Below are positions 15,319-57,329 of a stretch of DNA of 64,000 bases, piece after piece; within the stretch, counting starts at the first letter, position 1; each line of letters opens with the position of its first letter. The DNA is from Isurus oxyrinchus. Lineage: Eukaryota. The stretch covers positions 930,001 through 994,000 of the forward strand of contig JANJGN010000071.1 in the NCBI GenBank assembly GCA_026770705.1, written 5' to 3'. Below the pieces are notes generated by a model. That model saw only the letters and a list, made by a program, of their open reading frames with translations. It ran no database searches and was not told the DNA's origin. A program made the translations under genes and the position numbers.

Positions 15319-15374
15319 GAGTCTAGTGGATCCACAAACCATCCAGAGATAAATATTGAGATTTCTCTCCCCAG

Positions 15375-28059: not shown

Positions 28060-28356
28060 ATTTCACAGATAAACCCATGATATTCCCTGCTGAAATTATT
28101 GCAGGAAAGCGTGTGGATGTAAGCTGCACCTTCAACACAACGTGCAATGGAACAGCAGCACCTGTCTTAACCTGGGACACTCCCACTGACGTACGTGGAT
28201 CAGTCTCAAACACTGTAACTCAGCATGGTGTCACTCTGACCTATACTTCTGTTCTGACCCTGATCCCATCACTCAAACACCACGGACACACACTCTGCTG
28301 CAGAGTGAGATATCCATCTGTTTCATCGGAGCGGACCCTTGTACTAACTGTACAAG
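28060..28356 (+). CDS. Gene C: C2-set Ig domain 2 exon
   Basis: DFTDKPMIFP...VSCTFNTTCNGTAAPVLTW...TLCCRV...LTVQ; donor CAAG|gtaagt. Confidence 0.9.
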
Positions 28357-28719
28357 GTAAGTACTGACACCCTTGATTCTATATTAGCTGTAATAGGATA
28401 CAATGTGCAGAGCAAGATCCCACAAACATCACTGGGTTGAAGACAAAACAGGTCCTTTTTTATTAGTGATATTGACCAGGGAGAGCTCTTCCTGTATTGA
28501 GCCTTGGGATTGTTTATGCCTACCTGATAAGGCAGAGGGGGCCAAGGTTGAACTTAAAAGACAATATAGGATAATATAAATATTGTCTTCATTGATGTCA
28601 AAGATTTTGGGGGAGATGTAGTATAAAAGTTTAATATTAACAATGTAAATAGATAGTATTTATCATCAGTTACTCAAGGTCACATGAGAATAGAACACGG
28701 AGAGAGATAGTTCTATAGA

Positions 28720-30780
28720 TACCTAGGTACATAGAAACTAGGAGCAGGATTAGGACATTCAGCCCTTCAAGCCTTCTCCGCCATTCAATATGATCAAGGC
28801 TGACCCTCTATCTCAAAGCCTTATTCCCGCTTTCTCTCCGTACCCTTTGATGCCCCTAATATCAAAATATTTATCAGTTTCTTTCTTGAATACACTCAGT
28901 GACCCGGCCTCCACAGCCTCTGTGATGGAGAATTCCACAGATTGACCACCCTCTCAGTGAAGAAATGTTTCCCTATCTCAGTCCAAAATGGCCTGCCCTG
29001 TATCCTGAGATTGTCGCCCTTGGTTTTAGACTCCCCAACCAAGGGATGCATCCTCCCTCCATCCAGTCTGTCTATCTCTGTTAGAATTTCTTACGTTTAT
29101 TCAGGTCTCCTCTCATTCTTCTAAACTCTAGTGAATACAGACCCAGTCGTACCAATTCTCCTCATACGACAGTCCTGCCGCCCCTGGTATCAGCCTAGAG
29201 AACCTTCTCTGCACTCTCTCGACGGCAAGTCTATCCTTTTTTAGGGAGGGAGACCAAAACGGCACGTAGTACCCCATGTGCAGTCTCACCAAGACCTTGT
29301 ATAACTGCAGTGAGACATCCCTACTCCTGAACACAAATCCTCTTGCAATGAAGGCCAACATACCATTTGCCTTCCGAATTACTTGCTGCACCTGCCTGTT
29401 TACTTTCATTGGCTAGTGCACAAGGACACCCAGATCCCTTTGTACATCCACATTTCCCATTATATCACCATTTAAATAATACTCTGCCTTTCTGTTTTTC
29501 ACACCAAAGCCTACAATGTCACATTCATCCACATCATCTGCCATGTGTTTGCCCACACACACAACTTGTCTAAATCGCCTTGAAGCCTCTTTGCATCCTC
29601 CTCACAGCTCACACCCTTACCCAGCGTTGTGTCATCAGAAAACCTGGAAATATTGCACTTGGCTCCCTCACCCAAGTCATTTAAATATATCGTGAATAGT
29701 TAGGTCCCAAGCACGGATCGCTGTGGTACACCACTAGTCACCGCCTGCCACTCAGATAAAGACTAATTTATTCTGACCCTCTGTTTCCTGTCTGTCGACC
29801 AATTCTCAATCCATGCCAGTAAATTACCCCCAATCCCATGGGCTTTAATGTTGCCCACTAGCCTCTTATGTGGGACCTTATCAAAAGCCTTCCTGAAATC
29901 TAAAAACACCACATCCACTGGTTATCCCTTATCTATTCCACAAGTTACATCCTCAAAATCTCCAGTAGATTAGTTAAGCATGATTTTCCTTTCATTAACC
30001 CATGCTGACTTTGTCTAATCCCATTAATGCTTTCCAAGCGTTCCGTTAGCACACCTTATATAATAGGCTCTAGCGTTTTCCCCATGTTAGACTAACTGGT
30101 CTGTAATTCTCTGATTTTTCTCTCCCTTCTATTTTAAATAGTGGAGTTACAATTGCCACCCTCCAATCTATAGGAACTGCTCCAGAGCCTATAGAATTTT
30201 GGAGAATGACCACCAGTGCTTCCAATATTTCCAGGGTCACTTCCGTTAGTCTCTGGGATGTAGATTTTCAGGCCCTGGGGACTGTTCAACCTTTAACCCA
30301 TTAATCTCTCCAGATTCATTTTTTAAAACTAATCCTGATTATCTTCAATTCCTCCCTCTCACTAGACACTTGGTTCCCTAACATTCCTGGGAAATTATTT
30401 GTGTCCTCTTTTGTGAAGACAGAACCAAAATATATGTTCAGTTCTTCTGCCATTTCTTTGTTTCTCATTAGAATTTCCCCCATTTCTGACTGCAAGGAAC
30501 CTACATCGGTCACTGCTAATCTTTCTCTCTTCACATATTTATAGAAGCTTTTACAGTCGGTTTTTACGTTCCCTGCAAGTTTACTCCCATGTTCCATTTT
30601 CCCCTTCTTGATCAATCTTTTTGTCCACTTTTGCTGAATTCTAAACTGCTCCCAATCCTCAGCATTGCCGCTTCCCCTGGCAATTTTATGTCTCCTCTCT
30701 GGATCTAATACTATCCCTAATTTCTTTTGTAATCCCTGGTTGAGCACCATTTCCTGACTTATTTTTACGCCAGACAGAAA
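28720..30780 (-). mobile_element. CR1 LINE ORF2 fragment
   Basis: KANGMLAFIARG...LYKVLVRLH...VERVQRRFSRLIPG and KSFYKYVKRER motifs. Confidence 0.85.
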
Positions 30781-30899
30781 TGGATAATTGTTGTAGCAAA
30801 TGCTTCAGCCTTATCTTTTGCCCTGATGTGCTGGGCTCCCCCTTCATTGAGGATGGGGATATTTGTGGATTCCCCTCCTCCAGTGAGCTAATTGTCCGT

Positions 30900-31880
30900 T
30901 ACCATTGGATACGAGCATTAGTGAACTGTGTTAGACCATTATCGAAAATGAAAGCCGGACTCCAGTATAGCCTCACTATGATGGATATGACAAATCGATT
31001 TCCAGAGACCATCCCTTTAGGAACAATTACAGCTAAAGTAGTAATAGGGAAGTTAACCCAATTTTTTACCCATTATGGATTACTGCTGGAGATCCAGTCA
31101 GATCAAGGTTCCATCTCTATGTCTTAAAATTTTCCGAACATAATGAGTAATTTGGGTATAAAACAGTTAAAGTCCACAGCATATCATCCATAGACACGGG
31201 GATCTTTAGAGAGGGACCAACAAACCCTCAAAACAATGATTGAAGCTATTGTCATGAACTCCCCATGACTGGGACAAAGGACTGGATTTTCTTGTATTTC
31301 CCACACGAGATTCACCAACTGAATCGGCAGGTTTTAGTCTTTTTGGAATAACTTATGGACACGAGATAAGAGGCTGTCTGAAATACATCAAAGAAAGATA
31401 TTCTGGACAGAGGGATGAATCCTCTATTTCAGATGATGTGTCCATGTTTCAGGAACGGCTCATAGGAGCCTCCAAAGTGGCACAAGAACATCTTATAGTT
31501 TCTCAAACAGAAATGAAGGAATGGGGCAGACAGGCAAGCTGTGACCCGAACATCACAACCAGGGGGATGACGTGTTAGTATCATTGCCTTGGCAGGGGGA
31601 GCCTCTGAAAGCGCGGTTCAGTGGTCCCCACAAGGTAATTAGGAGGGTTGGTCAAGTAAATTATTTGATAGACACCCCAGATTGTAGAATAAAGAATCAG
31701 CTGTGACACATCAATATGTTAAAACGATACCATCGTAGGGAGGGAGGTAAAAAGGAGCAGGTATTTCATTTCCAACCAGATTCTGCATACATTACAGAAA
31801 GGTTAATGCAGCAATAAAACCAGATTCCTACCCAATCCCCCGTTTAGAAGATGGTATTGACGGGGTTGGCAGTGCCATGT
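30900..31880 (+). mobile_element. Gypsy-type integrase fragment
   Basis: LTMMDMTNRFPETIPL...YGLLLEIQSDQGS, STAYHP and a GPY/F-like PLKARFSGPHKV; contains stops and frameshifts. Confidence 0.8.
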
Positions 31881-31902
31881 TCCTTACTGAGATAAATTTG
31901 TT

Positions 31903-31938
31903 GGCAGTGGGGGGTGTTCGTGACCATCAGTGTGGAAG
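31903..31938 (+). pseudogene. Remnant 3' end of an additional Ig3 exon copy
   Basis: gcagtggggggtgttcgtgaccatcagtgtggaa resembles gcagtggaggggttcataaccatcactgtggaa. It is followed by the same CA-repeat and intron block (32481-32600 ~ 33300-33420) that follows Ig3a. Confidence 0.6.
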
Positions 31939-32890
31939 GGTTAGGTTTACAGGTTACACAGACCACACACGCACCAACAGACACACACACACATGNNNNN
32001 NNNNNNNNNNNNNNNNNNNNNNNNNNNNNNNNNNNNNNNNNNNNNNNNNNNNNNNNNNNNNNNNNNNNNNNNNNNNNNNNNNNNNNNNNNNNNNNNNNNN
32101 NNNNNNNNNNNNNNNNNNNNNNNNNNNNNNNNNNNNNNNNNNNNNNNNNNNNNNNNNNNCACACGCANNNNNNNNNNNNNNNNNNNNNNNNNNNNNNNNN
32201 NNNNNNNNNNNNNNNNNNNNNNNNNNNNNNNNNNNNNNNNNNNNNNNNNNNNNNNNNNNNNNNNNNNNNNNNNNNNNNNNNNNNNNNNNNNNNNNNNNNN
32301 NNNNNNNNNNNNNNNNNNNNNNNNNNNNNNNNNNNNNNNNNNNNNNNNNNNNNNNNNNNNNNNNNNNNNNNNNNNNNNNNNNNNNNNNNNNNNNNNNNNN
32401 NNNNNNNNNNNNNNNNNNNNNNNNNNNNNNNNNNNNNNNNNNNNNNNNNNNNNNNNNNNNNNNNNNNNNNNNNNNNNNNTCAGTGCTGCACTGGAGTCTC
32501 GGTGTCAGCTCCGATTCTGTGCTGAAGGAAGGTAAACTCCAGATCAACAAGACCCTGAATTGGATGAGCAACCTCCTTAACAGAGAATTGTAGATTTACC
32601 CCTCAGTGCTCCATCGATCAAATACAATTCATTGCCTGTCCAGCCCTTGGGGACATTCTGAGGATGTGAAAGGGAGTTTCTTTAAATCTGGATGGGCAGG
32701 GTCTCTGGTGGGAGAATGCTCCTGCAGTGTGACAGTTTACATAGGCAGTGCCCATTGTAAATGTGACATAGGAACTTATCTTGAGGGAAGGTGCCTAGAA
32801 ATGCATACAGACATCAGATACAGAGACATGATGCATGGAGTCTTCCTGTGCACTATGTTTGCTCACGTTAAAATCTTTATATGTTTTTAG

Positions 32891-33172
32891 ATGCACCACG
32901 GAATCTCTCAATCAATTCTCTTGATATGATTAACGCTTCATGGATCAATATAATTGAGGGGAATTCTGCAGTGATAATCTGCTCTGTCGAGAGCTTCCCA
33001 GCTTCTAACCTGACGTGGCGACATCTTAATGTCCCAATGAACAGAACAAGTTCCAACAATGAGCTGTGGTTGGTGATTCCTCACGTTACATCCAAGGACA
33101 CTGGAGACTATCAGTGTGTGGCAGAGAATGAACATGGAGCAGTGGAGGGATTCATAACCATCACTGTGGAAT
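32891..33172 (+). CDS. Gene C: Ig3a exon
   Basis: APRNLSINSLDMINASW...DTGDYQCVAENEHG...ITVE; canonical phase-1 splice sites. Confidence 0.9.
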
Positions 33173-33194
33173 GTGAGTTAATGCAAACTTCAAC

Positions 33195-33250
<56 letters not shown>

Positions 33251-34076
33251 CACACACAAACACACATGCACACACACGTGTCAGCTCCCTCTCCTCTCTC
33301 AGTGCTGCACTCGAGTCTCGGTAGCAGCTCTGATTCTGTGTTGAAGGAAGGTAAACTCCAGATCATCAAGACACTGAATTGGATGGAGCAACCTCCTGAA
33401 CAGTGAATTGTAGGTTTATCACCCAATACCCCATTATTCCAAAGCAATTCCTCCATGGTGAAATCTCCGTGAACATCCTGATCATGTGAAAGACACTTTC
33501 TTTTCTTCTAGCCCGACAGTGTCTCCTCTGGTGGAAGGCTGTAATTACAGCGTGACAGTTTACATATCCACACGCAGCAAGAGCTGAGCAACACTCAGCT
33601 TGGGCTGAGAAATGACAAGTAATGTTCACACCACACAAGCACCAGGCAGTGATCATCTCCAACAAGAGAGAATCTAACCATCTCCCCTTGATATTCAATC
33701 ACTTCACCATCGCTGAATCCCCCACGATCAACATCCTGGGGGATGTTAACCAAACACCGAACTGGACCGGCCATAAATACTGTGGCTACAGGAGCCGGTC
33801 AGAGGCTGGGAATTCTGTGGGGGTGCAAAACTCACCACCACCTCCTCAAGGGCAATTAGGGATGGGTAATAAATGCTGGTCTAGATAGATACATCCACTT
33901 CCCATGAATATGCAAAAAGGAACACACTGGCAGTGTCTGTTACAAATGGTGACATAGAAAATCATAATGGGGAAAGAAGCCTTGACATGCACATAGACAC
34001 CAGATGGAGAGAGATGATACCTGGAGTCTTGCTGTGCACTGTGTTTGCTCACAATGAAACTTTTATTTGTATTTAG

Positions 34077-34358
34077 ATGCACCACGGAACCCATCAATTA
34101 CTTCTCTTGATATGATTAACGCTTCATCGATCAATATAATTGAGGGGAATTCTGCAGTGATAATCTGCTCTGTCGAGAGTTTCCCAGCTTCTAACCTGAC
34201 GTGGCGACATCTTAATGTCCCAATGAACAGAACAAGTTCCAACAATGAGCTGTGGTTGGTGATTCCTCACGTTACATCCAGGGACACTGGAGACTATCAG
34301 TGTGTGGCAGAGAATGAACATGGAGCAGTGGAGGGGTTCATAACCATCACTGTGGAAT
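34077..34358 (+). CDS. Gene C: Ig3b exon (tandem duplicate of Ig3a)
   Basis: APRNPSITSLDMINASS...ITVE; canonical splice sites. Confidence 0.9.
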
Positions 34359-34369
34359 GTGAGTGTGGA

Positions 34370-34685
34370 GATACATTTGTTTGTTTGTTGTCTCCGTGGT
34401 CTCCATGGAGCCATTGGGATCGTGTTGTTTTTAATCCAGTTTTCTTCAATCCTCGCTCAGTCCACGTTATCCACACACCCAATTTTTCCTCTCCCTTTCT
34501 GTTTTTGCTCTCAGTTTCTCCTTCAATGGTTGTCAGGACAAGGCTGTCAGGTCTTCGTTTCCAATCTCCGTACTTGACGACCTTTCTCTCTCTAACTGTC
34601 CTGAACAACCCTTTTAATTGCTGAACGTCTCCTCTTGATCTAAGCCACTCATTGGTCTTTCTGTCCATCCAGCTGATTCTGAGCA
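34370..34685 (-). mobile_element. RTE-like LINE 3' fragment
   Basis: LRISWMDRKTNEW...LVLTTIEG motif. Confidence 0.55.
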
Positions 34686-35900
34686 TCTGGCAGCATCTGT
34701 GGAGAGAAAGACAGGGTTAGCGTTTGGAGTCCGTAAGACTCCTCTTCAGAGCTAAAGGGAAGTAGACATGTGGTGAAATATATCCTGTCTAAGGCGGGGC
34801 GATGGGACAGGTGGAGCTGGATAGAAAACCAGCGATAGGTGGAGGCAATGGAGAGATTGTGGAAGATGTCATAAACAAAAGGTCAATGGGTTGTTAATAG
34901 TGGTGGTATTGGATAAAGGAGGTGCTAATGGTGACATTAAGCAGAGTGTGATAATGGGCGGACCAGGGTAAGCACTCTGGAAAGAGACAGATGGCCCTCG
35001 TGGGGGTGTGGAAGGGGGAGGGGACAGTGGAGGGAATAAAGATCGAAAATAGACTAAAATCTGCGGTTTAACACAATCAATAAAATGGAAATGAATTTCA
35101 AATAATAATAATAAAAATAAGTGGAAAACAGTCAACAAATAAAACAATTAAAATGAATATATAAAAAAGGGTTCAAAAAGCAGTGAAGATCGAGGAGAGA
35201 GTTCATGATCTGAAATTGTTGAACTCAATATTCAGTCGGGAAGGCTGTAAAGTGCCAGGTCGGAAGATGAGGTGCTGTTCCTCCAGTTTGTGTTGGGCTT
35301 CACTGGAACAATGCAGCAGGCCAAGGACGGACATGTGGGCATGAGAGCAGGGTGGGGTGTTAAAATGGCAAGTGACAGGGAGGTCTGGGTCATGCTTGTG
35401 GACAGACCGAAGGTGTTCATCAGAGCGATCACCCAGTCTGTGTTTGGTCTGTCCCATGTAGAGGAGACCACATTGGGAGCAGTGAATGCAGTAGATTAAA
35501 TTGAAGGAAGTCTGCATGAAGCGCTGCTTCACCTGGAAGGAGTGTTTGGGTCATTGGACAGTGAGGGGGGAGGAAGTAAAGGGGCAGGTGTTGCACCTTC
35601 TGTAAATACATGGGAAGATGTCATCGGAGAGGGTTGAGGTGCTAGGGGTGATGGAGGAGTGGACCAGGGTGTCCTCGAGGGAATGATCCCTGTGGAATGC
35701 CAACGGGGTGGGGGTGGGGGGGGGCGGATGTGGTGAAGGGAAGATGTGTTTGGTGGTGGCATCATGCTGGAGTTGGCGGAAATGGCGGAGAATGATCCTT
35801 TGAATGAGGAGGCTGGTGGGGTGAAAAGTGAAGACAGGAGGGACCCTTACATTGCTCTGGGAGGGAGAGGAATTTGCAAGGGGGGATGCGCGGGAGATAC
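34685..35900 (-). mobile_element. Penelope-like element fragment (GIY-YIG endonuclease)
   Basis: NLIYCIHCSQCGLLYMGQTKHRLGDR..EHLRSV...KLEEQHLIF. Confidence 0.85.
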
Positions 35901-36226
35901 ACAATCTCCAACTCTTTCTCAACCATTAAGATGCTCCTTAAAACCATTAAGACACACCGTTAAAACCTCCTGCTTTCAGCGAGCTTTTGCTCACCTTTCC
36001 TAATATCTCCTAATGTGACTCAGGGTCAGATTTTGTCCGAAGGAGGTGAGAAATGATGGAGGGAATTCCAGAGGTTAGGGTCCAGGCAGCTTAAGGCACG
36101 GCCGCCAATGGTGGAGAGATGGGAATGGGAGAATGTCCAAGAGTTCAGAATTGGAGGAGCGCAGAGATTTCGGAGAGCTGTGGGGTGTGGGGATTACCTG
36201 CTGATTGTTCTCTGTCTTTGTTCCAG

Positions 36227-36502
36227 ATCCCCCACAGGAGACGATGGTGTCCATCAGCAGATCCTCAGGTGGGATAAGAGAGGGAAGCAATATCACATTA
36301 ACCTGCTCCAGTGAAAGTGTCCCACCGATATCTCATTACACCTGGTTCAGGATCGAGGGGAATACCAGCACCCAGTTAAACACAAGTAGCCGCACTCTCT
36401 CCTTCACTCCTGTAACACGGGAGAATGATGCAGGTTTCTACTGCACAGCGAGGAACCCAGTGGGTAACAGCACCTCCAACATCACCCACCTGAACGTACA
36501 AT
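36227..36502 (+). CDS. Gene C: Ig4 exon (CD22/sialoadhesin-like C2 repeat)
   Basis: YPPQETMVSIS...IREGSNITLTCSSESVPPISHYTWF...DAGFYCTARNPVG...LNVQ; splice sites ttccag| and CAAT|gtaagc. Confidence 0.9.
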
Positions 36503-36854
36503 GTAAGCATTTTACTCCCCCTGTCTCTGCTTAAAACTCAAACACTTTCTGTCTGAGGGCAGCTTCCTTGCTGTGGTTTAGCATAACTAGCATCACCTCC
36601 CTGCTTTTTTCACCCTGCGCCTCTCCGAGATACATAAGGAGATATTAGAACAGGGACTGAAAGCTCAGAGAAAGAGGCCAGATTTTAAGGAGTGTCTGAA
36701 ACGAGGAGAGAGATAGAAATGGAGAGGTTTACGGAGGGAATTCCAGAGCTCGGGGCCCAGGCAGCTGAAGGCACGGCCGCCAATGGTGGAGCGATAGGAA
36801 TCGGGGGATGGTCAAGAGGCCGGAATTGGAGGAACGCAGAGACCTCGGAGGGAT

Positions 36855-37740
36855 GTAGATGCTGGAGGAGGTTACAGAGATAGGGAGTGTTGTGGGGTCT
36901 GGAGGAGGTTACAGAGATAGGGAGGGTTGTGGGGTCTGGAGGAGGTTACAGAGATAGGGAGGGTTGTGATGGCTGGAGGAGGTAACAGAGATAGGGAGGG
37001 TTATAGGGGCTGGAGGAGGTAACAGAGATAGGGAGGGTTGTAGATGCTGGAGGAGGTAACAGAGATAGGGAGGGTTGTGGGGTCTGGAGGAGGTTACAGA
37101 GATAGGGAGGGTTGTAGGGGCTGGAGGAGGTTACAGAGATAGGGAGGGTTATAGGGGCAGGAGGAGGTAACAGAGATAGGGAGGGTTATAGGGGCTGGAG
37201 GAGGTAACAGAGATAGGGAGGGTTGTGGGGTCTGGAGGAGGTAACAGAGATAGGGAGGGTTGTGGGGTCTGGAGGAGGTTACAGAGATAGGGAGGGTTGT
37301 GATGGCTGGAGGAGGTAACAGAGATAGGGAGGGTTATAGGGGCTGGAGGAGGTAACAGAGATAGGGAGGGTTGTAGATGCTGGAGGAGGTAACAGAGATA
37401 GGGAGGGTTGTGGGGTCTGGAGGAGGTTACAGAGATAGGGAGGGTTGTGATGGCTGGAGGAGGTTACAGAGATAGGGAGGGGTGTAGGGGCTGGAGGAGG
37501 TTACAGAGATAGGGAGGGTTGTAGGGGCTGGAGGAGGTTACAGAGATAGGGAGGGTTGTAGGGGCTGGAGGAGGTTACAGAGATAGGGAGGGTTGTGATG
37601 GCTGGAGGAGGTTACAGAGATAGGGAGGGTTGTGGGGTCTGGAGGAGGTTACAGAGATAGGGAGGGTTGTGATGGCTGGAGGAGGTTACAGAGATAGGGA
37701 GGGTTGTAGGGGCTGGAGGAGGTAACAGAGATAGGGAGGG
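36855..37740. repeat. 37-bp minisatellite (ggaggaggttacagagatagggagggttgtggggtct) within an L2-type 3' end
   Basis: About 24 tandem units; related arrays at ~13330-13630 (reverse) and ~62620-62900. Confidence 0.9.
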
Positions 37741-38050
37741 GGTAAGGAGGGATTTGAAACGATGTTAATTTTAAAATTGTGGCATTGTCGGACCGGGAGC
37801 CAGTGTAGCTCAGTGACCAACAAGGAGTGATGTGTGAACGGGACTCGGTGTGAGTTAGGACATGGGGACAGCAGAGTTTGGGATGAGCTGATGTTTACGG
37901 AGAATGGAAGATGGGAGGTCGGGCAGGAGAGTGTTGGGATAGTCGAGTGCGGAGGTAACAAAGGCAGGAATGAGTGTTTCAGTGTTAAGATTCTATCTTA
38001 CGCTCTAACTTTGCTATGACGTTGTCTCATTGTTGTCCGTCCTTCCTCAG

Positions 38051-38344
38051 ATAAGCCGGAGATTTCCCAGCAGTCGGAGTGCACTCGAAGGTCAGAGGGG
38101 GTCACCTGTGTCTGTGTGGCCACCTCCAACCCACCCGGAGACCTCACCTGGCACCTGCCCAGTGCCAACATCAGTGGTAACCAAACACACGGAGGTTTTG
38201 TGTCGTGGCAGGTCAGAGATGGGCATCTGGTGACTGGTTCCCTCACCCTGATGAGACCCCAGGATGAGGGGGGAGTGATTGCATCCTGCTCGGTTCAAAA
38301 CCCACATGGGGAAGCCATGTTCAAGGTGAATCTGTGGGTCAAAG
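38051..38344 (+). CDS. Gene C: membrane-proximal Ig5 exon (MAG-domain-5/CD33-related type)
   Basis: YKPEISQQSECTRRSEGVTCVCVATSNPPGDLTW...IASCSVQNPHG...LWVK. The C-x8-CxC...SNP pattern is typical of the last Siglec domain. Confidence 0.88.
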
Positions 38345-39228
38345 GTGAGAGACTCGCTCAGGATCGATCTCCACTCAGCTGGATTGATCCCTAAACTCGA
38401 GAATTCCCTCCCTCAACCTCTCCACCTCTCTCTCTACCTCCTCTAAGATGCTCTTTACAACTGACCCCTTTGACCAAGCTTTGAATCACCTGACCTCATG
38501 TGACAATGGCAACACTTGGTCAAATTGGAGCCAGGCCGTTCAGGGGGTGATGTCAGGAAGCACTTCTTCACACAAAGGGGAGTGGAAATCTGGAACCCTC
38601 TCCCCCAGATAAGCTGCTTCATTGGGTGCAAGACAGAAAGCTTTGACAAAATGTCCTTTCTCAGCAATACTCAGGTTCTCCTCCCAAACGACGAAATATT
38701 ATAAATAAACATTACATAGATTACATCGAGAAACATTTTATATAAATGTTACATAGATTACATTGATAAATATTATATATAAATGTTACATAGATTACGT
38801 TGAGAAACGCAACAGCTGATTTGTGCAGAGCAAGATCCCACAAACAACAGCGTGAAAATGAGGTGATAATTGATTATTTTAGTGAGGTTAGTTGATACAT
38901 ATATATAGAAATTAAAGATATAATTACACATTTAGTGAGGGAAACCTGTCCATTTTAACAGGTCTGGGTGTGTATGTGACTCCAGTCTCAGACACCAACA
39001 TGGTTAACTCTTACCTGCCCTCTGAACTGGTCTCCCAGTTTGGGACAAACCAGTGGTTCAGGAGGAAGACCCCCCACCACCTTCTCAAGGGGAAACTAGG
39101 GATGGACAATAAATGTCAGCATTGCCCGAGAATGAGTATTTAAACACTGAGTGAGTGTATCGCTTCTCGAGATACATCGGAGCATCATTGTAAACCTGTA
39201 GTGCAGTAATTAATGGCTGTTTTTACAG

Positions 39229-39325
39229 GTAGAGACTCCAGTAAATGGACAGTAGGATTGTTCACGGCTGGGATCATGTTGAGTGTTTTCCTGGCTGGAA
39301 TCTTCATCTTCATCTGTGTGAGAAA
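39229..39325 (+). CDS. Gene C: neutral transmembrane exon
   Basis: Acceptor ttttacag|; GRDSSKWTVGLFTAGIMLSVFLAGIFIFICVRK; donor AGAAA|gtaagt. Confidence 0.88.
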
Positions 39326-40047
39326 GTAAGTCTGAAGATTTAACTTGATTTTAATCTAAACATTTGCTTAGGACTAATTGGACAGTTTTTACAAAGGGCC
39401 AGCACAGGCACGATGGGCTGAGTGGCTTCCTCCTGAGCTGTGAGATTTTAAATTCTTTCATCGAATGTGACTGTCATTGGCATGGCCAATACTAATTGCC
39501 CATTCCCAATTGCCCCTTGAGAAAGAGGTGGTGAGCTGCCTTCTTGACCCGCTGCAGTCCATGTGGTGTAGGTACACCCACAGTGCTGTTAGAGAGGGAG
39601 TTCCAGGATTTTGACCCAGCGACAGTGAAGGAACGGTGATATATTTCCAAGTCAGGATGGTGAGTGACTTGGAGGGGAACTTCCAGGTGGTGGTGTTCCC
39701 ATGTGTCTGCTGCCCTTGTCCTTCTAGATGGTAGAGGTCGTGGGTTTGGAAGGTGCTGTTGAAGGAGCCTTGCTGAGTTGCTGCAGTGCATCTTGTAGAT
39801 GGTACACACACTGCTGCCACTGTGTGTTCGTGGTGGAGGGAGTGAATGTTTAATGTGGTGGATGGGGTGTGGATCAATCGGGCTGCTTTGTCCTGGATGG
39901 TGTCAAGCTTCTTGATTCTGTGCTTTGTGCAGAAGTGATTTAAAGAGACAGTCCAGTCATTGGTGTAAGGTTACAGTGGGGTCTGTGTCTGTGCTGCACT
40001 GACTCTCTGCTATATGATAACCACAGTTTGATATTGTGTTATTGCAG

Positions 40048-40129
40048 GAGAAAGACAGCGATGGAGGAGAGAGTTTCAGGGACCAGTGACATTGCATTGA
40101 CCCCCAGTCCACTCTCTGTGAAGCACCAG
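40048..40129 (+). CDS. Gene C: cytoplasmic exon 1, module A
   Basis: Acceptor attgcag|; RKTAMEERVSGTSDIALTPSPLSVKHQ; donor CAG|gtacag; in phase with the TM exon. Confidence 0.8.
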
Positions 40130-40264
40130 GTACAGGAGCTGTTTACACTCACTCCAAAGCTTCAATCTCAGTGTGTAGACAACACGTGTCCCAGATTCCC
40201 AGCCCAGTTACCCACTGATTTGTACCTGTGGAGTCAGCAATGTTTCAGTATCATGCTGTCTCTC

Positions 40265-41018
40265 TGTTATGACACAGCAACTGGTAAAGACTGTTGTTTA
40301 AAATCCCAGAGGGAAACTTTAAACAACTGTCATAACCTATATTTCCCAGTGGAATGTTTGAGATGCAGCTCTAAATTCAGGAATAAGACCACCAGTTCTC
40401 GAGATGGTTTTATATCAAACTACATGAGCCATTTATTAATTAACACAAGTTAAACATATGCACATGGCTACAAACTAGTATTATCATAACTTTTTAACAA
40501 ATTCCCAAACTAATCTCCTCTAAGATAACCCATAGAATTTAAGCAGACACCCAGGCAAAGCATTTTCACCTCACAAATTCCAAATGAGGTTCCTTTCACT
40601 TTGGATCCTTTGCAGACAGGTGTAGGATTACAGCTGCTTTGATGTTACAAGCGTCTGCTCTGCACACACAAAACTGCTCAAGTTATACCCAGCTCTTCTC
40701 TTTGAATGTAAATTCTAATTGTATCATCAGGACCTTTGAACTCCATCCCTTCAAACAATAAATCCTCTGTCATAGTATCAATTTTATCAATAAAATAAAT
40801 GTTGATTGGTTTAAGATTTCACTCTCAGGTTTTGAATGCTCTGTTTAAAAATACAAATTTTTATGCCTCAGTTTACATCTCAAAACTACTATACATCAAA
40901 TACCCAGACTGGCTGGCTTTAATCCAATTAAAACACACACAGACACACCCACAGACTAAACCCCGATGTGAATAAAAATAATTTCCAATAACATGATATT
41001 TATTAATCGCATCATGAC
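40265..41018. mobile_element. Solo LTR-like element (paralog at ~43186-44117)
   Basis: tgttatgaca...catgaca TG/CA termini; shared by both duplicated modules. Confidence 0.55.
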
Positions 41019-41529
41019 AGTCTCTCTCTCTATCCCAACCTCCCTTTCTTTCTCTCTCTCTCTCTTTCTCTCTCTCTCATCCTCTCTCTGATTACAAGGT
41101 GCATGTTAATGAGCTTCACACCAGACACTTGAGTGCAGAATCCAACTGTCACTCACCAGAACCATTACCGAGGGAGTGCAAGACTGACAGAGGGTCAGTA
41201 CTGAGGGAGTGTTGCACTGTCGGAGGGTCAGTACTGAGGGCGAGCTGCACTGTCGGAGTGTCAGTACTGAGGGAGCGCTGCACTGTCGGAGGGTCAGTAA
41301 TGAGGGAGCGCTGCACTGTCGGAGGGTCAGTACTGAGGGAGTGCTGCACTGTCGGAGGGTCAGTCCTGAGGGAGCGTTGCACTGCCATAGGTGGTATCTT
41401 TCATATGACATGAGAGAGAGGGTTAAACCAACTGAGACACGACTGACATTAACAAGGCTGCACAATAATTTAACCCTATCAGTGCCAGTAAATGATGTGA
41501 GGATAACTTCTGTTTCGATTTCTCTGTAG

Positions 41530-41778
41530 GGTAAACAGAACGTGCTGATTACTGAGCCCCAGAACACAAAGAGAGACGCAACTGGCGAGGGGGAGACCCC
41601 AGCTCCCTGGGGTCTCTCTGAAGATGCAGTGGGAGGCGATGTTGGACATGGGAACCCTGACAAACCTGAAGAGTTTCTCTACGCCAATCCCCAAGTCTTG
41701 AGGATGTCCAGTGGTGATGGGTCTGTCCACAGGGAAGTGGAGACGGAATACGCACAGATCAGGTTCGAGCATAACTGA
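41530..41778 (+). CDS. Gene C: terminal cytoplasmic exon A (degenerate ITIM FLYANP + ITSM TEYAQI)
   Basis: Acceptor ctctgtag|; GKQNVLITEP...EEFLYANPQV...ETEYAQIRFEHN-TGA. AATAAA at 42345-42350. Confidence 0.82.
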   Translation, partial: GKQNVLITEPQNTKRDATGEGETPAPWGLSEDAVGGDVGHGNPDKPEEFLYANPQVLRMSSGDGSVHREVETEYAQIRFEHN

Positions 41779-42967
41779 ATGAGAAATGGGGAGAGTGAGT
41801 GAGGAGGTATGGGGGTGGGGGTAGTGATTGAGATTCCTGGGAACAGGAAACACCCACTGGGGGAGAGGGGGAAAGAGGGAGGAAGGGATGGAATTGGGCT
41901 GCGGTTGGTGTGGTTTGGAATGAAATGCTTCTCCAGAGAGGACTGGATGCTGAGCCATTGGGGATAGAGATTCACTGTCTTTCTCTCTCTCTCTCTCTCT
42001 CTCCCTCTCTCTCTCGCTCTCTCCCTCTCTCTCTCTCTCTCTCTCCCTGTCTCTGTCTTTCTTTCTGTGTCTGTCTCTCATTCCCTATCTCCAGCTCCTC
42101 CTTTAAGATGCCCGTTAATAACTGACTTTGTTGACTCAGCTGTTGGTCTCCTGTCCCTAATATCTCCTCATGTGCCTCAGAGTCAGGTGAAGATGTCACT
42201 AACAATCCCCAGATGAGCCTTAGGACATTTTGCTACATTGAAGGTGCTATATAAATGCAAGTGGTTGTAGTAACTCTGATCTGCTTCGATTAACAATAGA
42301 ACCACAAAGGCTCCTTCGACAGGGAGTGTGTGCAGCAGGGTCACAATAAATACATTGAGCTGTGAGATTTTTAATTCTTTCATCGAATGTGTCTGTCACT
42401 GGTGATGTCAGCATTAATGCCCATCCCTAATTGCCCTTGAGAAGGTGGTGGTGAGCTGCCTTCTTGACCCGCTGCGGTCCATGTGGTGTAGGTACACCCA
42501 CAGTGCTGTTAGAGAGGGAGTTCCAGGATTTTGACCCAGCGACAATGAAGGAACGGTGATATATTTCCAAGTCAGGATGGTGAGTGACTTGGAGGGGAAC
42601 TTCCAGGTGGTGGTGTTCCCATGTGTCTGCTGCCCTTGTCCTTCTAGATGGTAGAGTTCGTGGGTTTGGAAGGTGCTGTTGAAGGAGCCTTGCTGAGTTG
42701 CTGCAGTGCATCTTGTAGATGGTACACACACTGCTGCCACTGTGTGTTCATGGTGGAGGGAGTGAATGTTTAATGTGGGGGATGGGTTGTAGATCAATCG
42801 GGCTGCTTTGTCCTGGATGGTGTCAAGATTCTAGATTCTGTGCTTTGTGCAGAAGTGATTTAAAGAGACAGTCCAGTCATTGGTGTAAGGTTACAGTGTG
42901 CTCTATGTCTGTGCTGCACTGACTCTCTGCTATATGATAACCACAGTGTCATATTGTGTTATTGCAG

Positions 42968-43049
42968 GAGAAAGACAGCGATGGAGGAGAGAGTTTCAGG
43001 GACCAGAGACATTGCATTGACCCCCAGTTCACTCTGTGTGAAGCACCAG
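42968..43049 (+). CDS. Gene C: cytoplasmic exon 1, module B
   Basis: RKTAMEERVSGTRDIALTPSSLCVKHQ; splice sites intact. Confidence 0.75.
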
Positions 43050-44609
43050 GTACAGGAGCTGTTTACACTCACTCCAAAGCTTCAATCTCAGTGTGTAGAC
43101 AACACATGTCCCAGATTCCCAGCCCAGTTACCCACTGATTTGTATCTGTGGAGTCAGCAATGGTTCAGTATCATGCTGTCTCTCTATTATGACACAGAAA
43201 CTGGTAAAGGCTGTTGTTTAAAATCCCAGAGGGAAACTTTAAACAACTGTCATAACCTATATTTCCCAGTGGAATGTTTGAGATGCAGCTCTAAATTCAG
43301 GAATAAGACCACCAGTTCTTGAGATGGTTTTATATCAAACTACTTGAGACATATATTAATTTACACAAGTTAAACATATGCACATGGCTACAAACTAGTA
43401 TCATCATAAATTTTTAACAAATTCTCAAACTAATCTCCTCTAAGACAACCCATTATCTTTAAGCAGACACCCAGGCAAAGCATTTTCACCTCACAAATTC
43501 CAAATGAGGTTCCTTTCACTTTGGTTCCTTTGCAGACAGGTGTAGGCTTACAGCTGCTTTGATGTTACAAGCCTCTGTTCTGCACACACAAAACTGCTCA
43601 AGTTATACCCAGCTCTTGAGTGTAAGGAAGACGGAGATTGATGGGCTCTTGATTGGTCAGGGGATCAAAGGTTAGGAGAGAAGGTGGGAGAATGGGGTTT
43701 GTGAAACATATCAGCCATGTATGAATGGTGGAGCAGACTCGATGGACCGAATGGTCTAATTTCTCCTCCTATATCTGATGGTCTTATGGCTTCTGTTTGA
43801 AGGTAAATTCGCAATGTATCATCAGGACCTTTGAACTCCATCTCTTCCAATAATAAATCCCCTTTTATCGTATCAATTTTATTAGTAATATAAACGTTGA
43901 TTGGTTTAAGATTTCACTCTCAGGCATTTAATGTTTTATTTAAAAATGCAAATTACCACTTTACCTCTTTGTTTACATCTGAAAACTACTATACATCAAA
44001 GCACCCAGACTGGCTGGCTTTAATCCAATTAAAATACACACAGACACACACACAGACTAAACCTCTGTTTAAAAAGACAGTTTGCATTTATAATACAAAC
44101 ATTAATAGATTAATAACACTCTGTCTCTGTCCCTCCTCTCTCCCTCTCTCTCATCCTCTCTCTGATTACAAGGTTCATGTTATTGAGCCTCACACCAGGC
44201 ACCTGTGTGCAGATTCCAAGCCATCACTCACCAGAGCCATTACCGAGGGAGTGCTGCACTGTTGGAGGGTCAGTACTGAGGGAGTGCTGCACTGTTGGAG
44301 GGTCAGTACTGAGGGAGTGCTGCACTGACAGAGGGTCAGTACTGAGGGAGCGCTGTATTGTCGGAGGGTCAGCACTGAGGGAGTGCTGCACTGTCAGAGG
44401 GTCAGTATTGAGGGAGTGCTGCACTGTTGGAGTGTGATAGAGATTAAATTATAAAGAGAGAGAGAAAGCGAGAGAGACAGAGAAAGAGAGTGAAAAAAAG
44501 GGTTAAACCCACTGAGATACGACTGACACTAATGAGGCTGCACAATAATTTAACCCTATCAGTACCAGTAATTGATGTGAGGATATCTTCTGTTTCCATT
44601 TCTCTGTAG

Positions 44610-44858
44610 GGTAAACAGAACGTGCTGATTACTGAGCCCCGGAACACAACCAGAGACACAACTAGTGAGGGGGAGACCCCAGCTCCCCGGGATCTCTCTG
44701 AAGGTCCAGTGGGAGGCGATGTTGGACATGGGAACCCCGACAATCCCGCCAAGCTTCTCTACGCCAACATCAACTTTTCAAAGCTGCCCGGCGGTGACAG
44801 GACTGTGCACAGGAGCGAGGACACGGAATACGCACAGATCAGGTTCCAGAAAAACTGA
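44610..44858 (+). CDS. Gene C: terminal cytoplasmic exon B (ITIM LLYANI + ITSM TEYAQI)
   Basis: GKQNVLITEP...KLLYANINF...DTEYAQIRFQKN-TGA; classic Siglec proximal ITIM and distal ITSM spacing. Confidence 0.82.
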   Translation, partial: GKQNVLITEPRNTTRDTTSEGETPAPRDLSEGPVGGDVGHGNPDNPAKLLYANINFSKLPGGDRTVHRSEDTEYAQIRFQKN

Positions 44859-45049
44859 GTGTGAAACAGGGAGCGGGGCTGTGGGGTGTGTGCAGCCAAC
44901 ATGGCCAAATAGTAATGAACAGAAATATGATGTTGCTCAACTTTTTTTTATTGGTTCTGAGTGAGCTTTCTGAATGCTGCACCTTTTTCCATGCTGTAAA
45001 AGATTGTGAGAAGCTTATGAATTATGTATAATTTAACATCTGTTAATAC

Positions 45050-47155
45050 AAGGTGAGGTGAGAGTGACTGCCTTTGACATCAAGGCTGCATTTGACCGAG
45101 TGTGGCATCTAGGATCCCGAGTAAAACTGGAGTCAATGGGAATCAGGGGTGGTACGAAAGTATAATAATTTGCTTAATATTTTCCTGGTTTGTTGTAAAC
45201 TAGGTTTATGGGTGTGAGTGTAGATGGGTCTGTCTGTGTGGTTTAATTACACCTGGAGTCAGGTAGACTGCAAGTTTGAGATTATCAAAAGAAGCTAGGT
45301 GTAGAAATGTACTTGAAATGCTAATGAGTGAACATGGAGGCTTTCTTTGCATGTGAGGTGAGAAAGAGAATTTTAATTTTTAGGTAAGTGAAGGGATTGT
45401 TTGGATTTCAAAGGGCTGTTGGTCTGTTTACAACGAGGCCGATATGCAAGGCAAAGGAGTGTGTTTATTTTTCCCAAAGGTTATTGACAACATTGGCAAC
45501 ATGAAAGTTTTTATATTATGGGAAATGTATCATTCCAAAGACATATGGAACAATGAAATTTACATATCAAAGAGAGAGAAACATCAACAAAGGAGAATGA
45601 AAGGCTATGTTGGGGATCATGTAAAATCTAACAAGAGTGTGTGAATCAGCCTTGAAGAAGCCTCCAGGCATTTGTCCATAGGTCTGTTATGTTCAGCGAC
45701 TGTCGTTCGAGAAAGCCATTTGGAAATCCACTCTCAAGTGTGTTCTGTGTTAACTTGCTGGTTCTGTTTTTAAATCTAAAATCTATTTTGGTTTATTGCC
45801 TAAAAGGAGTTTTACTGCTCACTTCCAGACTTCCCAATGCCTGTCCACCATCTTCAAGGTTAATTAGGAAGTTTAGGATTTGTTATAGTAGTAACCGTAT
45901 CCTTATGTGTGTGCTTTAAATCTTAAATAAATATTAAAATTTAATTTTTAAGATCTCTAAATGTCTTGGTTGACACATTACTCCTGAATTCAGTGCACAC
46001 ATCTCATAATAAATACAAATCGCAAAACTGTTGTGATAGTGTGACCAAGTTTCCCTTGTGGATTTGGTCCCCCGGCACACATCATCTACCACATCATAAC
46101 AGAGGGAAAACTCTCCACTGGTTGGAGCCATACCCAGCACAAAGGAAGATAGTTGTGGTTGTTGGAGGTCAATCATCTCAGTTCCAGGACATCACTGCAG
46201 GAGTTACTCAGGGTAGTGTCCAAGACCCAACCACCTTCAGCTGCTTCATCAATGACCTTCCTTCCATCATAAGGACAGAAGTGTGGATGTTCACTGATGA
46301 TTGCACAATGTTCAGCACCATTCACGTCTCCTCAGATACTGAAGCAGTCCTTGTCCAAATGCAGCAAGACCTGGACAATATCCAGGCTTGGGCTGACAAG
46401 TGTCAGGCAATGACCATCTCCAATAAGAGAGAATCTAACCATCGCTCCTTGATGTTCAATGACATTACCACTGCTGAATGCCCCACTATCAACATCCTGG
46501 TGGTTACCATTGACCAGAAATTGTACTGGACTAGCCATAAAAATACTGTGGCTACAAGAGCAGGTCAGAGGCTGGGAATCATGCAGTGAGTAACTCACTC
46601 CAGACTCCCCAAAACCTGTCCACCGTCTTCAAGGCACAGGTCAGGAGTGTGATGGAAGACTCTCCACTTGCCTGGATGAGTGCAGCTCCAACAAGATTCA
46701 ATAAACTCAACACCACTCAGGACAAAGCAGCCCCACTAGTTCGGCTCCCCATCCACAAACATTCACTCTCTGCACAACCGACACACAGTAGCAGCAGTGT
46801 GTACCAGCTACAAGGTGCACTGCAGGAACTCACCAAAACTCCTTAGGCAGCACCTTCAAACACACGACCACTACCATCTCGAATTACAGGGCAGCAGATA
46901 CATGGTAACACCACCACCTGGAAGTTACCCTCCAAGTCACTCACTATCCTGACTTGGAAATATATCGGCCGTTCCTTCACAGTCACTGGGTCCTAATCCT
47001 GGAACACCCTCCCTAACAGCATTGTGGGTGTACCTACACCACATAGACTGCAACAGTTCAAGAAGGCAGCTCATTACCATATTCTCAAGGGCTATTAGGG
47101 ATGGGCAATAATTCTGGCCTCGCCAGTTCCGTCCATATCCCATAAATGAATATAA
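45050..47155 (+). mobile_element. CR1-clade LINE RT fragment with a nested solo LTR (45150-46101)
   Basis: FDIKAAFDRVWH, QGSV..PTTFSCFINDLPS and FTDD motifs. It interrupts the 3' flank shared with genes A/B. Confidence 0.8.
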
Positions 47156-48189
47156 AAAACAAGCAATTAAAATGCTCAGACATTTCTCTATATTGTTTTT
47201 CAAATGAAATACCATACTCTGGTGAATAACTGCATTCTCCAAGGCACCATTTCCTGTTATCACATGCCCTTTTCATTATTTACAATCATGTACCTTCATT
47301 TGTAATGTAACATTCCCATGTAAACATGTCACATTGTAGTTACACCCTCCTGCCAGTGGTGGTGCTCTAGTGTCATAGTTTTACCTCTCAGAAGATGGAG
47401 GAAATATATCCACTGTATTTACAATATTAGAAACACTCAGGGGTGACCAGGGGATTCTTTAGGTCATGTTTACGATGTTGTTAAGATACAAGGGGCCAGT
47501 GGGATTTTTCCACTGCGTTTACAATGTTGTTAAGACAGGATTCGGGTGAAAGATGACCTTCAACCCATCATCCCTCTCATGCCGCGCGGGATCAATAGCC
47601 TTAAGTCAGGGCCTGGCAGTTTGTGGGAACAGTCCCTGTGCCTGATTGGATAGGCTCAAAGTGAACCCAGTGTTGGGTCTTGAGCCTCAAGATCCTGGAA
47701 CAGGCACAGAGTGGACACCTCGGATGGATGTCAAAAACCCCATGGACACTTTTTGGGTGAAGTGTAGGGGGTGGGTATGGAGTCGGGTGGGGCAGTTATC
47801 CCCAGTGTCCTGGGACCAATATTTATCCCTAAACCAACATCATTAAAAAAAAACAGATGTTCTGGGTCTGTATCTCACTGCTGTTTGTGGGATCCTGCTG
47901 TGCAGAAATTGTCTGCCATGTTTCCTACTGTTCCACAGCATCCACTGTTCAAAAACATTTCTCAGGGAATGAAGGACTATCTTTGAAGTGCAGATCCCCG
48001 TTGTAATGTAGGAAACACCACAGTCAATTTGCGCACAGCAAGCTCCCACAAACAGCAATGTGAGAATGAGCCAGACCATCTGTTTTTAGGGTGTTAGTTG
48101 GGGGTAAATATTGGCCCCAGTATTCTAAGGCACTCGATACAGGGTTGTGTTTAAGAAGTTTTTGAAGTGTCTGGCACAGTTTTCTAAAG

Positions 48190-53989: not shown

Positions 53990-54720
53990 GGTCTGACAGA
54001 GCAGCATTCCCTCAGTGCCCACCCTCTGACAGTGCAGCACTCCCTCAGTACTGACCCTCTGACAGTGCAGCACTCCCTCACTACTGACCTTCGGACAGTG
54101 CAGCACTCCCTCAGTACTGACCCTCTGGTAGTGCAGCACTCCCTCAGTACTGACCCTCCGACAGTGCAGCTCTCCCTCAGTACTGACCCTCTGGGAGTTC
54201 AGCACACCTTCAGTACTGACCCTCTGACAGTGCAGCTCTCCCTCAGTACTGACCCTCAGGGAGTGCAGCACTCCCTCAGTACTGACCCTCCGACAGTGCA
54301 GCACTCCCTCAGCACTGACCCTCCGGCAGTGCAGCACTTCCTCAGTACTGACCCTCCGACAGTGCAGCTCTCCCACAGTACTGACCCTCTGGGAGTTCAG
54401 CACACCCTCAGTACTGACCCTCTGACAGTGCAGCACTCCCTCAGTACTGACCCTCTGGGAGTGCAGCACTCCCTCAGTACCGACCCTCTGACAGTGCAGC
54501 ACTCCCTCAACACTGACCGTCCAACAGTTCAGCACTGATTCACTACTGACATTTTGATAGTGCCGCGCTCCCTCAGTATTGACCCTGTGACAGTGCAGCA
54601 CTCCCTCAGTACTGACCCTCTGGGAGTGCAGCAGTTCCTCAGTGCTGACCCTCCAACAATGCAGCACTCCCTCAGCACTGACCCTCCAACAGTGCAGCAC
54701 GCCCTCAGCACTCCCTCACT
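53990..54720. repeat. 33-bp minisatellite array
   Basis: Tandem units; flanks duplicated at 56440-57330. Confidence 0.9.
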
Positions 54721-55264
54721 GGGGAGAGTCTGTCTGCGTTTTGAGCTGTAACCTTGAGACGGTCTCAAACCCCAACATTCCGTCTCAGAGACAGAAAGAG
54801 TGTGTGAGTGTGTGGGAGAGAAAGACAATGTGTGGGAGAGAGTGAGAGTGTGTTTGTGTGAGAGAGAGAAGGAGAGAGAGAAAGAGAAAATGTGCATGTA
54901 TGTGTGTGTGTGAGTTTGTGTGTGAGCGTGTGTTTGTATGCGTGTGCATANNNNNNNNNNNNNNNNNNNNNNNNNNNNNNNNNNNNNNNNNNNNNNNNNN
55001 NNNNNNNNNNNNNNNNNNNNNNNNNNNNNNNNNNNNNNNNNNNNNNNNNNNNNNNNNNNNNNNNNNNNNNNNNNNNNNNNNNNNNNNNNNNNNNNNNNNN
55101 NNNGTTCACAGTTATACAGGTTGCTAGGGACCACTTTTCCGCCTCTCTGTCAGACTGTGTGTATCTGACAGCAGGTCAGGCAGAAATAGTCCAGAATGCA
55201 CTGTGGTTTTGTAGCATTGAAACAACGACATGAACTAAATGAGTGCTGCACCAAATAAAGACAT

Positions 55265-55519
55265 GGAGTGACCACACCAAAAAACCACGTGACTTCCCCA
55301 GTTTCACATCTCCCTCAAACACAGAAAAACTGGGTTAACACTGACCCTCCTCCCAGAGCCAGTTCACCTCGTGTCCGATGCAGTCAGGAGAGGAAGATCA
55401 TCTCTACTCCGATCCTGCTAAACTGAACATTTCCAGAATTAGATCAGCTCCATGAAGTGTCTCCAGTTAGTCATTCATCTGACAGGATTGACTCTACAAC
55501 CCTGGGGACTCATTCTCCT
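55265..55519 (+). promoter_or_regulatory. Possible promoter and non-coding exon 1 of gene D
   Basis: Clustered ACCACA/AACCAC (RUNX), CACGTG (E-box) and ACTTCC (ETS) at ~55270-55300; donor CCT|gtaagt at 55519/55520, upstream of the gene D leader acceptor at 58261. Confidence 0.4.
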
Positions 55520-57270: not shown

Positions 57271-57329
57271 GGGGAGAATCTGCCTGGGTTTTGAGCTGAA
57301 ATCATGAGCAGGTCTTAAATCCTTCCGTA

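Follow-up and report, generated by a model that had tools for sequence, protein, structure and literature searches.

Inhibitory receptors whose cytoplasmic tails are altered by splicing are well known (MAG, CEACAM1, PECAM-1), and in CD22, SIRP-alpha, PECAM-1 and CEACAM1-L/S several tyrosines lie within immunoreceptor tyrosine-based motifs of the inhibitory (ITIM) or switch (ITSM) kind, the number or type of which is changed by splicing. Among the Siglecs, the CD33-related members of mammals combine a V-set domain bearing an FFR arginine with C2 domains, a single transmembrane (TM) segment and a tail in which a membrane-proximal ITIM precedes a distal ITIM-like or ITSM-type motif, TxYxx(V/I). 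To our knowledge, each of these mammalian genes has one such tail module. The immunoglobulin (Ig) mu secreted/membrane switch uses a composite internal/terminal exon, at which splicing competes with cleavage and polyadenylation, and in MAG (Siglec-4) a short stop-bearing cassette exon is included or skipped. One study describes L-MAG and S-MAG as isoforms whose cytoplasmic tails differ because a small exon close to the 3' end is alternatively spliced (PMC3683929). Here, we analyze a Siglec gene of the shark Isurus oxyrinchus that lies in a 64,000-nt stretch of DNA (the window, meaning the whole stretch analyzed) holding a plus-strand cluster of shark Siglec genes, and whose two-exon cytoplasmic module is present twice behind one TM exon.

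We refer to the two copies as modules A and B and to their exons as cyt1A, cyt2A, cyt1B and cyt2B (Table 1). The reading we favor, at a probability of about 0.6, is a modular tail in which cyt2A would act as a composite exon and, together with exon skipping, would allow a single ectodomain to carry an A+B, a B-only or an A-only tail. That an inhibitory receptor of the Ig superfamily has tail isoforms is known, and the gene resembles the CD33-related Siglecs in its V-set domain with the FFR arginine, its C2 domains, its single TM segment and a tail with an ITIM ahead of TxYxx(V/I) (several of its shark relatives are called 'CD33-like' by NCBI). It differs from them in having two copies of the module, with Pro three residues after the tyrosine in the first. 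Like MAG, it is a Siglec whose cytoplasmic tail would be variable by alternative splicing, whereas MAG has no duplicated module and no serial stacking. The likeness to Ig mu lies in one exon with a weak internal 5' splice site ahead of its own stop and of a poly(A) site, here a predicted one; unlike in Ig mu, the exons that follow are paralogous to those of the first module, and the tail would be lengthened by repetition with no secreted/membrane swap. The gene also recalls the multi-motif tails of CD22, SIRP-alpha, PECAM-1 and CEACAM1, none of which, as far as we know, is built from a recent tandem two-exon tail copy with a phase-matched internal donor.

A two-exon tail unit repeated behind one transmembrane exon

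When the window was compared with itself by local BLASTN, the two modules aligned in two blocks, 39434-40697 with 42356-43617 at 95.5% over 1264 columns and 40695-41793 with 43790-44873 at 80.3% over 1113 columns (E = 0 for both), and a repeat search returned the same A/B pairs as families D4, D5, D6, D9, D10 and D11. The duplication of the tail unit is real and far beyond chance. The units have a common start point within the intron, 110 nt past the TM exon, and homology between them ends about 13-15 nt past the stop codons (41793 and 44873). There is one TM exon only: a self-search of 38900-39433 gave five short repeat matches, none over 39229-39325, and the TM part of the great white shark protein P0136 matched only 39228-39326 within 25000-46000 (tblastn). 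That module B might be part of another gene that lost its TM exon was ruled out, given the common intronic start point and the lack of any ectodomain piece between the units.

Both modules have intact reading frames and splice sites. The acceptor (ttattgcag/G) and donor (CACCAG/gtacagg) of cyt1A and cyt1B are identical, and cyt2A and cyt2B share the acceptor tctctgtag/GG. The latter two exons differ at 44 of 251 aligned nt, with no indel or stop in 249 nt, and their peptides share 55 of 82 residues and differ at 27. Tail A reads FLYANP ... TEYAQIRFEHN and tail B LLYANI ... TEYAQIRFQKN. Set against the ITIM consensus, (I/V/L/S)xYxx(I/V/L), the LLYANI of tail B fits, and the FLYANP of tail A fails through Phe at −2 and Pro at +3. 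Each tail matches the ITSM consensus, TxYxx(V/I), with its TEYAQI, and codons 72-79 show 0 nt differences between A and B. Pfam gave no match in either tail exon, as expected of a disordered tail.

The similarity of A and B is uneven along the unit. Identity is ~96% up to an insert found in B only and 83-88% across the remaining intron. From 90 nt before the end of the intron to 130 nt into cyt2 it is 90-93%, and it stands at 71% around the first tyrosine motif and 100% over TEYAQIR. The simplest reading would be an old duplication whose 5' part was later homogenized by gene conversion that halted at the insert. We also considered an origin of the unit by unequal crossing-over between flanking repeat copies. 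It agrees with the fact that the same interspersed repeat opens each unit, but the only third copy of that repeat (46694-47158, 81%) is inverted and lies 1.8 kb beyond B. A 33-nt tandem repeat is present in both cyt1-cyt2 introns (41083-41459 and 44158-44501), and large arrays of it occur at ~54.0-57.4 kb (54000-57400) and elsewhere in the window.

The two units also differ in their 3' surroundings. Between the stop of A and module B there is a single canonical hexamer, the AATAAA at 42345, with a U/GU-rich stretch behind it, and after B no canonical hexamer occurs in the window until 45926. Behind B lies a 3' flank common to two upstream Siglec genes; both of those genes have an AATAAA within it, and the corresponding letters are altered behind tail B. 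Downstream of A there are 560 nt of unrelated sequence. Because the shared family flank stands behind B and not behind A, B would occupy the ancestral 3' context and A would be the added copy.

A sequence-only reading of this DNA had already described much of this arrangement, and apart from the first base of the TM exon it holds throughout: self-BLASTN and repeat families recover its duplicated ~2.4-kb block with the two cytoplasmic exons, the TM-region self-search and the P0136 alignment agree with its single TM exon, the exon letters give the intact splice sites and equal 249-nt terminal exons it reported, and the translations yield its FLYANP plus TEYAQI in A and canonical LLYANI plus TEYAQI in B. 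The AATAAA that it assigned to A is likewise in place. Its TM exon exists and ends where it was said to, although the start moves by one base, from 39230 to 39229.

A proposed composite exon and the isoform models of related sharks

We scored a profile of the two cyt2 peptides, each encoded by a single exon, against 1.84 billion representatives and obtained 12 matches. Ten of the 12 were identified; all are shark Ig-superfamily proteins, and they come from great white, basking, zebra, epaulette and whale sharks, catshark and smooth-hound. Their names are mostly Siglec, CD33-like or MAG-like, the exceptions being hemicentin-1-like, uncharacterized and a gene-model id, g13655.t1. The close sequence relatives of the tails are annotated Siglecs. 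Two further word searches with the returned shark proteins as queries gave 164 matches (120 listed) and 30 matches, and no protein encoded by the window was among the matches listed (120 of 164; 30). The species accordingly lacks annotation there.

The closest annotated gene is a great white shark 'myelin-associated glycoprotein-like' gene with isoforms X1-X6 (XP_041037215 to XP_041037221), which maps collinearly on the window, exon by exon (tblastn). It carries the A signature EEFLYANPQVLRMSSGDGSVHRE-ETEYAQIR and then the B signature LLYANISFSKLPSGDRTVHRSEDTEY, as does the window. Three classes of tail appear among its RefSeq models. Isoforms X1, X2 and X6 run from TM through cyt1A and cyt2A and, past TEYAQIR, directly into cyt1B-cyt2B, placing A and B in series. 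Two others have a B-only tail, X4 as TM-cyt1B-cyt2B and X5 as TM-cyt1A-cyt2B. X3 is A-only, stopping seven residues after TEYAQI via an out-of-frame join to cyt2B. An in-frame B tail is thus present in 5/6 isoforms, and the own stop of cyt2A ends 0/6. These RefSeq isoforms presumably rest on RNA-seq introns, as the out-of-frame join of X3 and the choice by X4 and X5 between two near-identical exons suggest.

The serial layout extends beyond this gene. Models with modules in series are found at other great white loci (P0135, P0133, P0063 and P0140) and in a second genus, at P0001 of the basking shark; a basking shark protein, XP_078389619, agrees with the window in exon order and in both tail signatures, A and B. 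Among 19 relatives' proteins that we inspected, 7 have two modules in series, 8 a single A-type module, 2 a single B-type module and 2 neither. In P0003, P0046, P0139, P0142 and P0146, the A-type exon is a true last exon, ending IRFKRN.

In the window, cyt2A has an internal 5' splice site before its own stop, in a phase that keeps the frame, and so has the layout of a composite exon. This GT donor (41763-41764) had been overlooked in the sequence-only reading. Trimmed there, cyt2A ends at 41762 and comprises 233 nt with AG as its last letters. The TM exon ends AA/, the trimmed cyt2A ends AG/ and both cyt1 exons open with G, so that the phases are equal: as the trimmed cyt2A has the phase of the TM donor and cyt1 starts with G, a 41762-to-42968 join would be in frame. 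This in-frame serial join rests on phase arithmetic, the flanking letters and the relatives' models, the window having been searched exon by exon. When the great white serial model P0136 was aligned to the window by tblastn, its match stopped at 41763, and the resulting junction, TEYAQIR/RKTA, is present in P0136, P0024, P0134, P0135 and P0133. Splicing at the internal site is present in the RefSeq models of other sharks.

In the mechanism that we propose, the two-exon module would have been duplicated in tandem long ago behind one TM exon. Module B would be the ancestral inhibitory tail of the family, with LLYANI as its ITIM, TEYAQI as its ITSM-type motif and the shared 3' flank; module A would be of a derived but conserved YxxP type that keeps the tyrosine with Pro at +3 in place of an ITIM and retains TEYAQI. 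As a terminal exon, cyt2A would close the mRNA by means of its stop codon and of the AATAAA at 42345. As an internal exon, it would be cut at the donor at 41762, 16 nt before that stop, and joined in frame to cyt1B-cyt2B, and the resulting A+B tail would present four tyrosine motifs. A B-only tail would arise by skipping A. We expect that Isurus oxyrinchus would splice the gene in the same manner as the great white models. A word search of sequencing runs listed 23, of which 0 contained half or more of the query words.

Table 1. Positions, within the window, of the tail units and of the exons and signals of the gene.
Feature	Position	Strand	Remarks
V-set exon of the tail-owning Siglec gene	26821-27190 (3' boundary approximate)	+	Open reading frame, Pfam, tblastn of P0136, P0046 and P0142
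C2-type Ig exons	~28047-28361, 32884-33171, 34070-34357, 36205-36501, 38053-38349 (within 28047-38349)	+	Pfam, collinear tblastn
Single TM exon	39229-39325, 97 nt	+	Starts in phase 1; ends with 2 nt of a codon, AA/gtaagt
Tail module A (duplication unit, copy 1)	39434-41793	+	Self-BLASTN, repeat families
Interspersed repeat, 5' end of unit A	39446-39919	.	BLASTN; same repeat in unit B at 42368-42839
Exon cyt1A	40048-40129, 82 nt (1 + 81 nt; phase 0 at its end)	+	Agrees with cyt1B at 79/82 nt
Exon cyt2A	41530-41778, 249 nt including stop 41776-41778	+	Encodes FLYANP, TEYAQI
Internal 5' splice site CAG/GTTCGA	41760-41768, cut 41762/41763	+	16 nt before the cyt2A stop
AATAAA	42345-42350	+	Lies where unit B adjoins, 567 nt past the A stop; TGTGAGATTTTT comes next; predicted signal
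Tail module B (duplication unit, copy 2)	42356-44873	+	Self-BLASTN, repeat families
Exon cyt1B	42968-43049, 82 nt	+	Exon reading of the window
172-bp insert, B only	43618-43789	.	A/B identity falls here, from ~96% to ~83-88%
Exon cyt2B	44610-44858, 249 nt including stop 44856-44858	+	Encodes LLYANI, TEYAQI
3' flank behind B, common to two upstream Arg-TM Siglec genes	44884-45052	+	23207-23372 at 79%, 3374-3539 at 76%

Two tail types and the alternatives to a modular tail

We built a tree of 27 cyt2 modules, pattern-picked from 26 chosen proteins (of 146) and the window, with tails that did not fit the pattern left out. The 16 modules (of 27) of YxxP type form one clade (100/98), and Pro stands at +3 in 16/16 of these A-type modules. 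The window exon cyt2A (A2 in the tree) groups with great white module 1 (100/99), sharing 68 of 78 residues, and cyt2B (B2) is placed with the ITIM modules, its closest neighbor being great white module 2 at 90% (71-74 of 82 residues identical; 74/82, or 90%, for P0133). Siglecs of the great white and of the basking shark include modules of both types. The A/B split therefore predates those lineages, and A and B are not alleles. The FLYANP tail is a member of a conserved YxxP tail type and no one-off degenerate ITIM.

For trees of separate columns, three non-lamniform rows were dropped and P0147 was added; P0148 had no row, its ITSM tyrosine being replaced by Phe. The motif-bearing columns 47-78 place the type label in one clade (100/99). 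Over columns 1-46 the label needs three changes, and there an A-type module shares 96% identity with window B2. The mosaic pattern fits what conversion of everything but the type-defining segment would leave. In a cross-species comparison at the protein level, window A2 and great white module 1 differ at 9/46 residues in the N-terminal part vs 1/32 in the motif part (Fisher 0.041), and window B and great white at 5-6/46 residues in the first part and 3-5/32 in the motif part. We argue that the FLYANP segment, though without an ITIM, may be under constraint. P0148 is a basking shark protein (XP 'Siglec-13') with an A-type tail in which Phe replaces the ITSM tyrosine (TEFTQI), and the ITSM motif would appear to be lost in some family members, as there.

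Several observations weigh against a modular tail. The internal donor GTTCGA is weak, agreeing with 6/9 positions of the consensus MAG/GTRAGT, and the same AG/GT occurs in cyt2B (CAG/GTTCCA), since these letters encode I-R-F. Because AG/GT is dictated by the coding of I-R-F, the donor would be a by-product of coding that a gene predictor could equally exploit, and the relatives' isoforms are automatic RefSeq annotations of other sharks' assemblies. The NG86 ratio of nonsynonymous to synonymous change (dN/dS) between A2 and B2 is 0.96, which alone fits neutral drift of one copy. A word search with the 82-residue cyt2A exon peptide found no candidate of 0.55-1.75 times its length, a search silent on longer proteins. 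Finally, the own stop and AATAAA at A and the altered hexamer at B would fit A as the usual end of the gene. As regards the donor, a coding by-product would have been made usable by the duplication. As regards the dN/dS, its values by thirds are 0.90, 0.79 and undefined, and substitutions between A2 and B2 are concentrated in codons 47-71 (pS 0.41 vs 0.10 in codons 1-46); the ratio does not discriminate between the readings.

The sequence-only reading had proposed a switch between alternative last exons. One part of that proposal stands, in that the great white RefSeq models put differing tails on one ectodomain and TM segment; that cyt2A is simply a last exon does not, given the serial joins. 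In its strict form, with mutually exclusive sets TM-cyt1A-cyt2A (own stop and AATAAA) or TM-cyt1B-cyt2B that are never joined, we consider a switch unlikely. It draws on the in-frame stop in A, the stop of B, the only canonical AATAAA before B and the U/GU-rich stretch after it, on the B-only isoforms X4 and X5 and on the many paralogues in which an A-type exon ending IRFKRN is truly the last. The serial models of relatives contradict it: no counterpart isoform ends at the stop of A, contrary to the proposed use of cyt2A with its own stop, while 3/6 read A into B, and even the stop of the A-only X3 comes from the out-of-frame cyt2B join. The window itself contains the phase-matched internal donor.

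It is doubtful that only module B is used, with A a skipped and slowly decaying relic of the duplication. The dN/dS of 0.96, the departure of A from the ITIM consensus and the ancestral 3' flank at B would all agree with such a history, but the frame, the stop position and all four splice sites of A are intact, its motif part is identical to the great white module at 31/32 residues, and YxxP is the sole tail of many annotated paralogues, so that the type is no decay product. We regard as rather more doubtful still the converse, in which only A, as the first in order and with its own stop and poly(A) signal, is used, and what was once the end of the gene survives in B as a stranded remnant. In its favor, A is proximal and complete, and the shared flank behind B has an altered AATAAA. 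Against it, the 249-nt exon of B is still open, encodes canonical ITIM and ITSM and has 74/82 (90%) identity to module 2 of P0133, and in the great white B is the in-frame tail of five of the six isoforms, its stop being borrowed even by X3.

An assembly artefact, with two alleles or haplotypes of one tail placed in tandem, is hardly credible and was rejected: the first 1.26 kb of the units are 95.5% identical, a level possible for diverged haplotypes, but the terminal exons differ at 44/251 nt and 27/82 residues, B has the 172-bp insert, A and B fall in different clades that each have members in two other genera, and the same A-then-B order recurs in independently assembled great white loci.

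The Siglec gene, its cluster and its family

The gene that owns the modular tail has an N-terminal V-set Ig domain of Siglec/CD22 type. The exon peptide 26833-27183 scores 44 bits against Pfam V-set (cut-off 26; E = 2.8e-11) and 38.9 bits against Ig_CD22 (cut-off 27; E = 1.3e-09), and the V-set open reading frame includes DAGPYFFRIEF. The context of the FFR arginine reads DAGPYFFRIEFDNG, and the same FFR.E context is found in shark proteins that NCBI names Siglecs. We take this F-strand arginine to be the conserved sialic-acid-site arginine, which makes it a putative sialic-acid-site residue. Four of the five C2 exon peptides match Pfam C2-set_2, Ig_3 or I-set, the 38116-38337 piece of the last C2-like exon gave no Pfam match, and the order of the C2 exons is that of great white P0136 (tblastn, collinear).

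Different parts of the gene have different nearest relatives. The V-set exon region (26821-27231) shares 90-92% identity with great white P0046 and P0142 and only 77% with P0136, and the TM exon is 97% identical to P0046, while the tails are closest to P0136. The gene is a mosaic, which suggests exon shuffling or gene conversion within the cluster. The C2-type exons at 32884-33171 and 34070-34357 (plus strand) are near-identical and both match residues 270-364 of P0136; runs of N at 31996-32479 lie just upstream of the first. The pair could reflect an exon duplication or an assembly issue. A long array of a 37-nt tandem repeat (36736-37886) occupies part of the intron before the last C2-like exon.

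Two upstream Siglec genes on the plus strand end in an Arg-bearing TM exon followed by a very short tail (2407-2544 and 22226-22363), and these ends are 93-96% identical to the end of the great white 'Siglec-14' P0141. With such Arg-TM genes upstream, the cluster pairs activating-type with inhibitory-type receptors. The middle gene has two V-set exons in a row (11694-12179 and 15356-15826, plus strand).

ITIM plus ITSM, as in module B, should recruit SHP-type phosphatases. Module A is without the +3 hydrophobic residue of an ITIM, and retains the ITSM together with a YxN context, a kind that Grb2-type SH2 domains bind. With its four tyrosines, the serial form would resemble multi-motif tails such as those of CD22 and SIRP-alpha. 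For the predicted Siglec described here, binding of sialylated glycans and recruitment of SHP-1, SHP-2 or SAP are putative.

On a wider scale, it is possible, and we put it forward tentatively, that lamniform sharks use such modules as stackable cassettes. In many genes, two to four copies of modules of two types kept apart, YxxP+ITSM and ITIM+ITSM, would stand behind single TM exons. Through a phase-matched donor in each module, splicing would set the number and type of motifs on one ectodomain, and selection would hold the motif third while conversion scrambles the rest. The layout is already visible, as predicted models, in the automatic annotation of great white and basking sharks. Our search of openly available literature found no paper on shark Siglec tails or duplicated tail exons.

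What is unusual is a whole two-exon tail unit in tandem together with a phase-matched donor in the first copy, by which the copies may be chained in series, passed over or used singly. The tail thus resembles a stackable module more than a plain either-or switch. In passages of a teleost study in which sharks go unmentioned, fish genomes are described as without CD33-related inhibitory Siglecs (PMC7226832). Sharks nonetheless carry large Siglec clusters with ITIM+ITSM tails beside Arg-TM partners, which bears on the history of the Siglecs. If the modular reading is true, a single lectin head could signal through one module or two and through a tail that has or lacks a canonical ITIM, and the arrangement would be a simple genetic route to graded inhibition.

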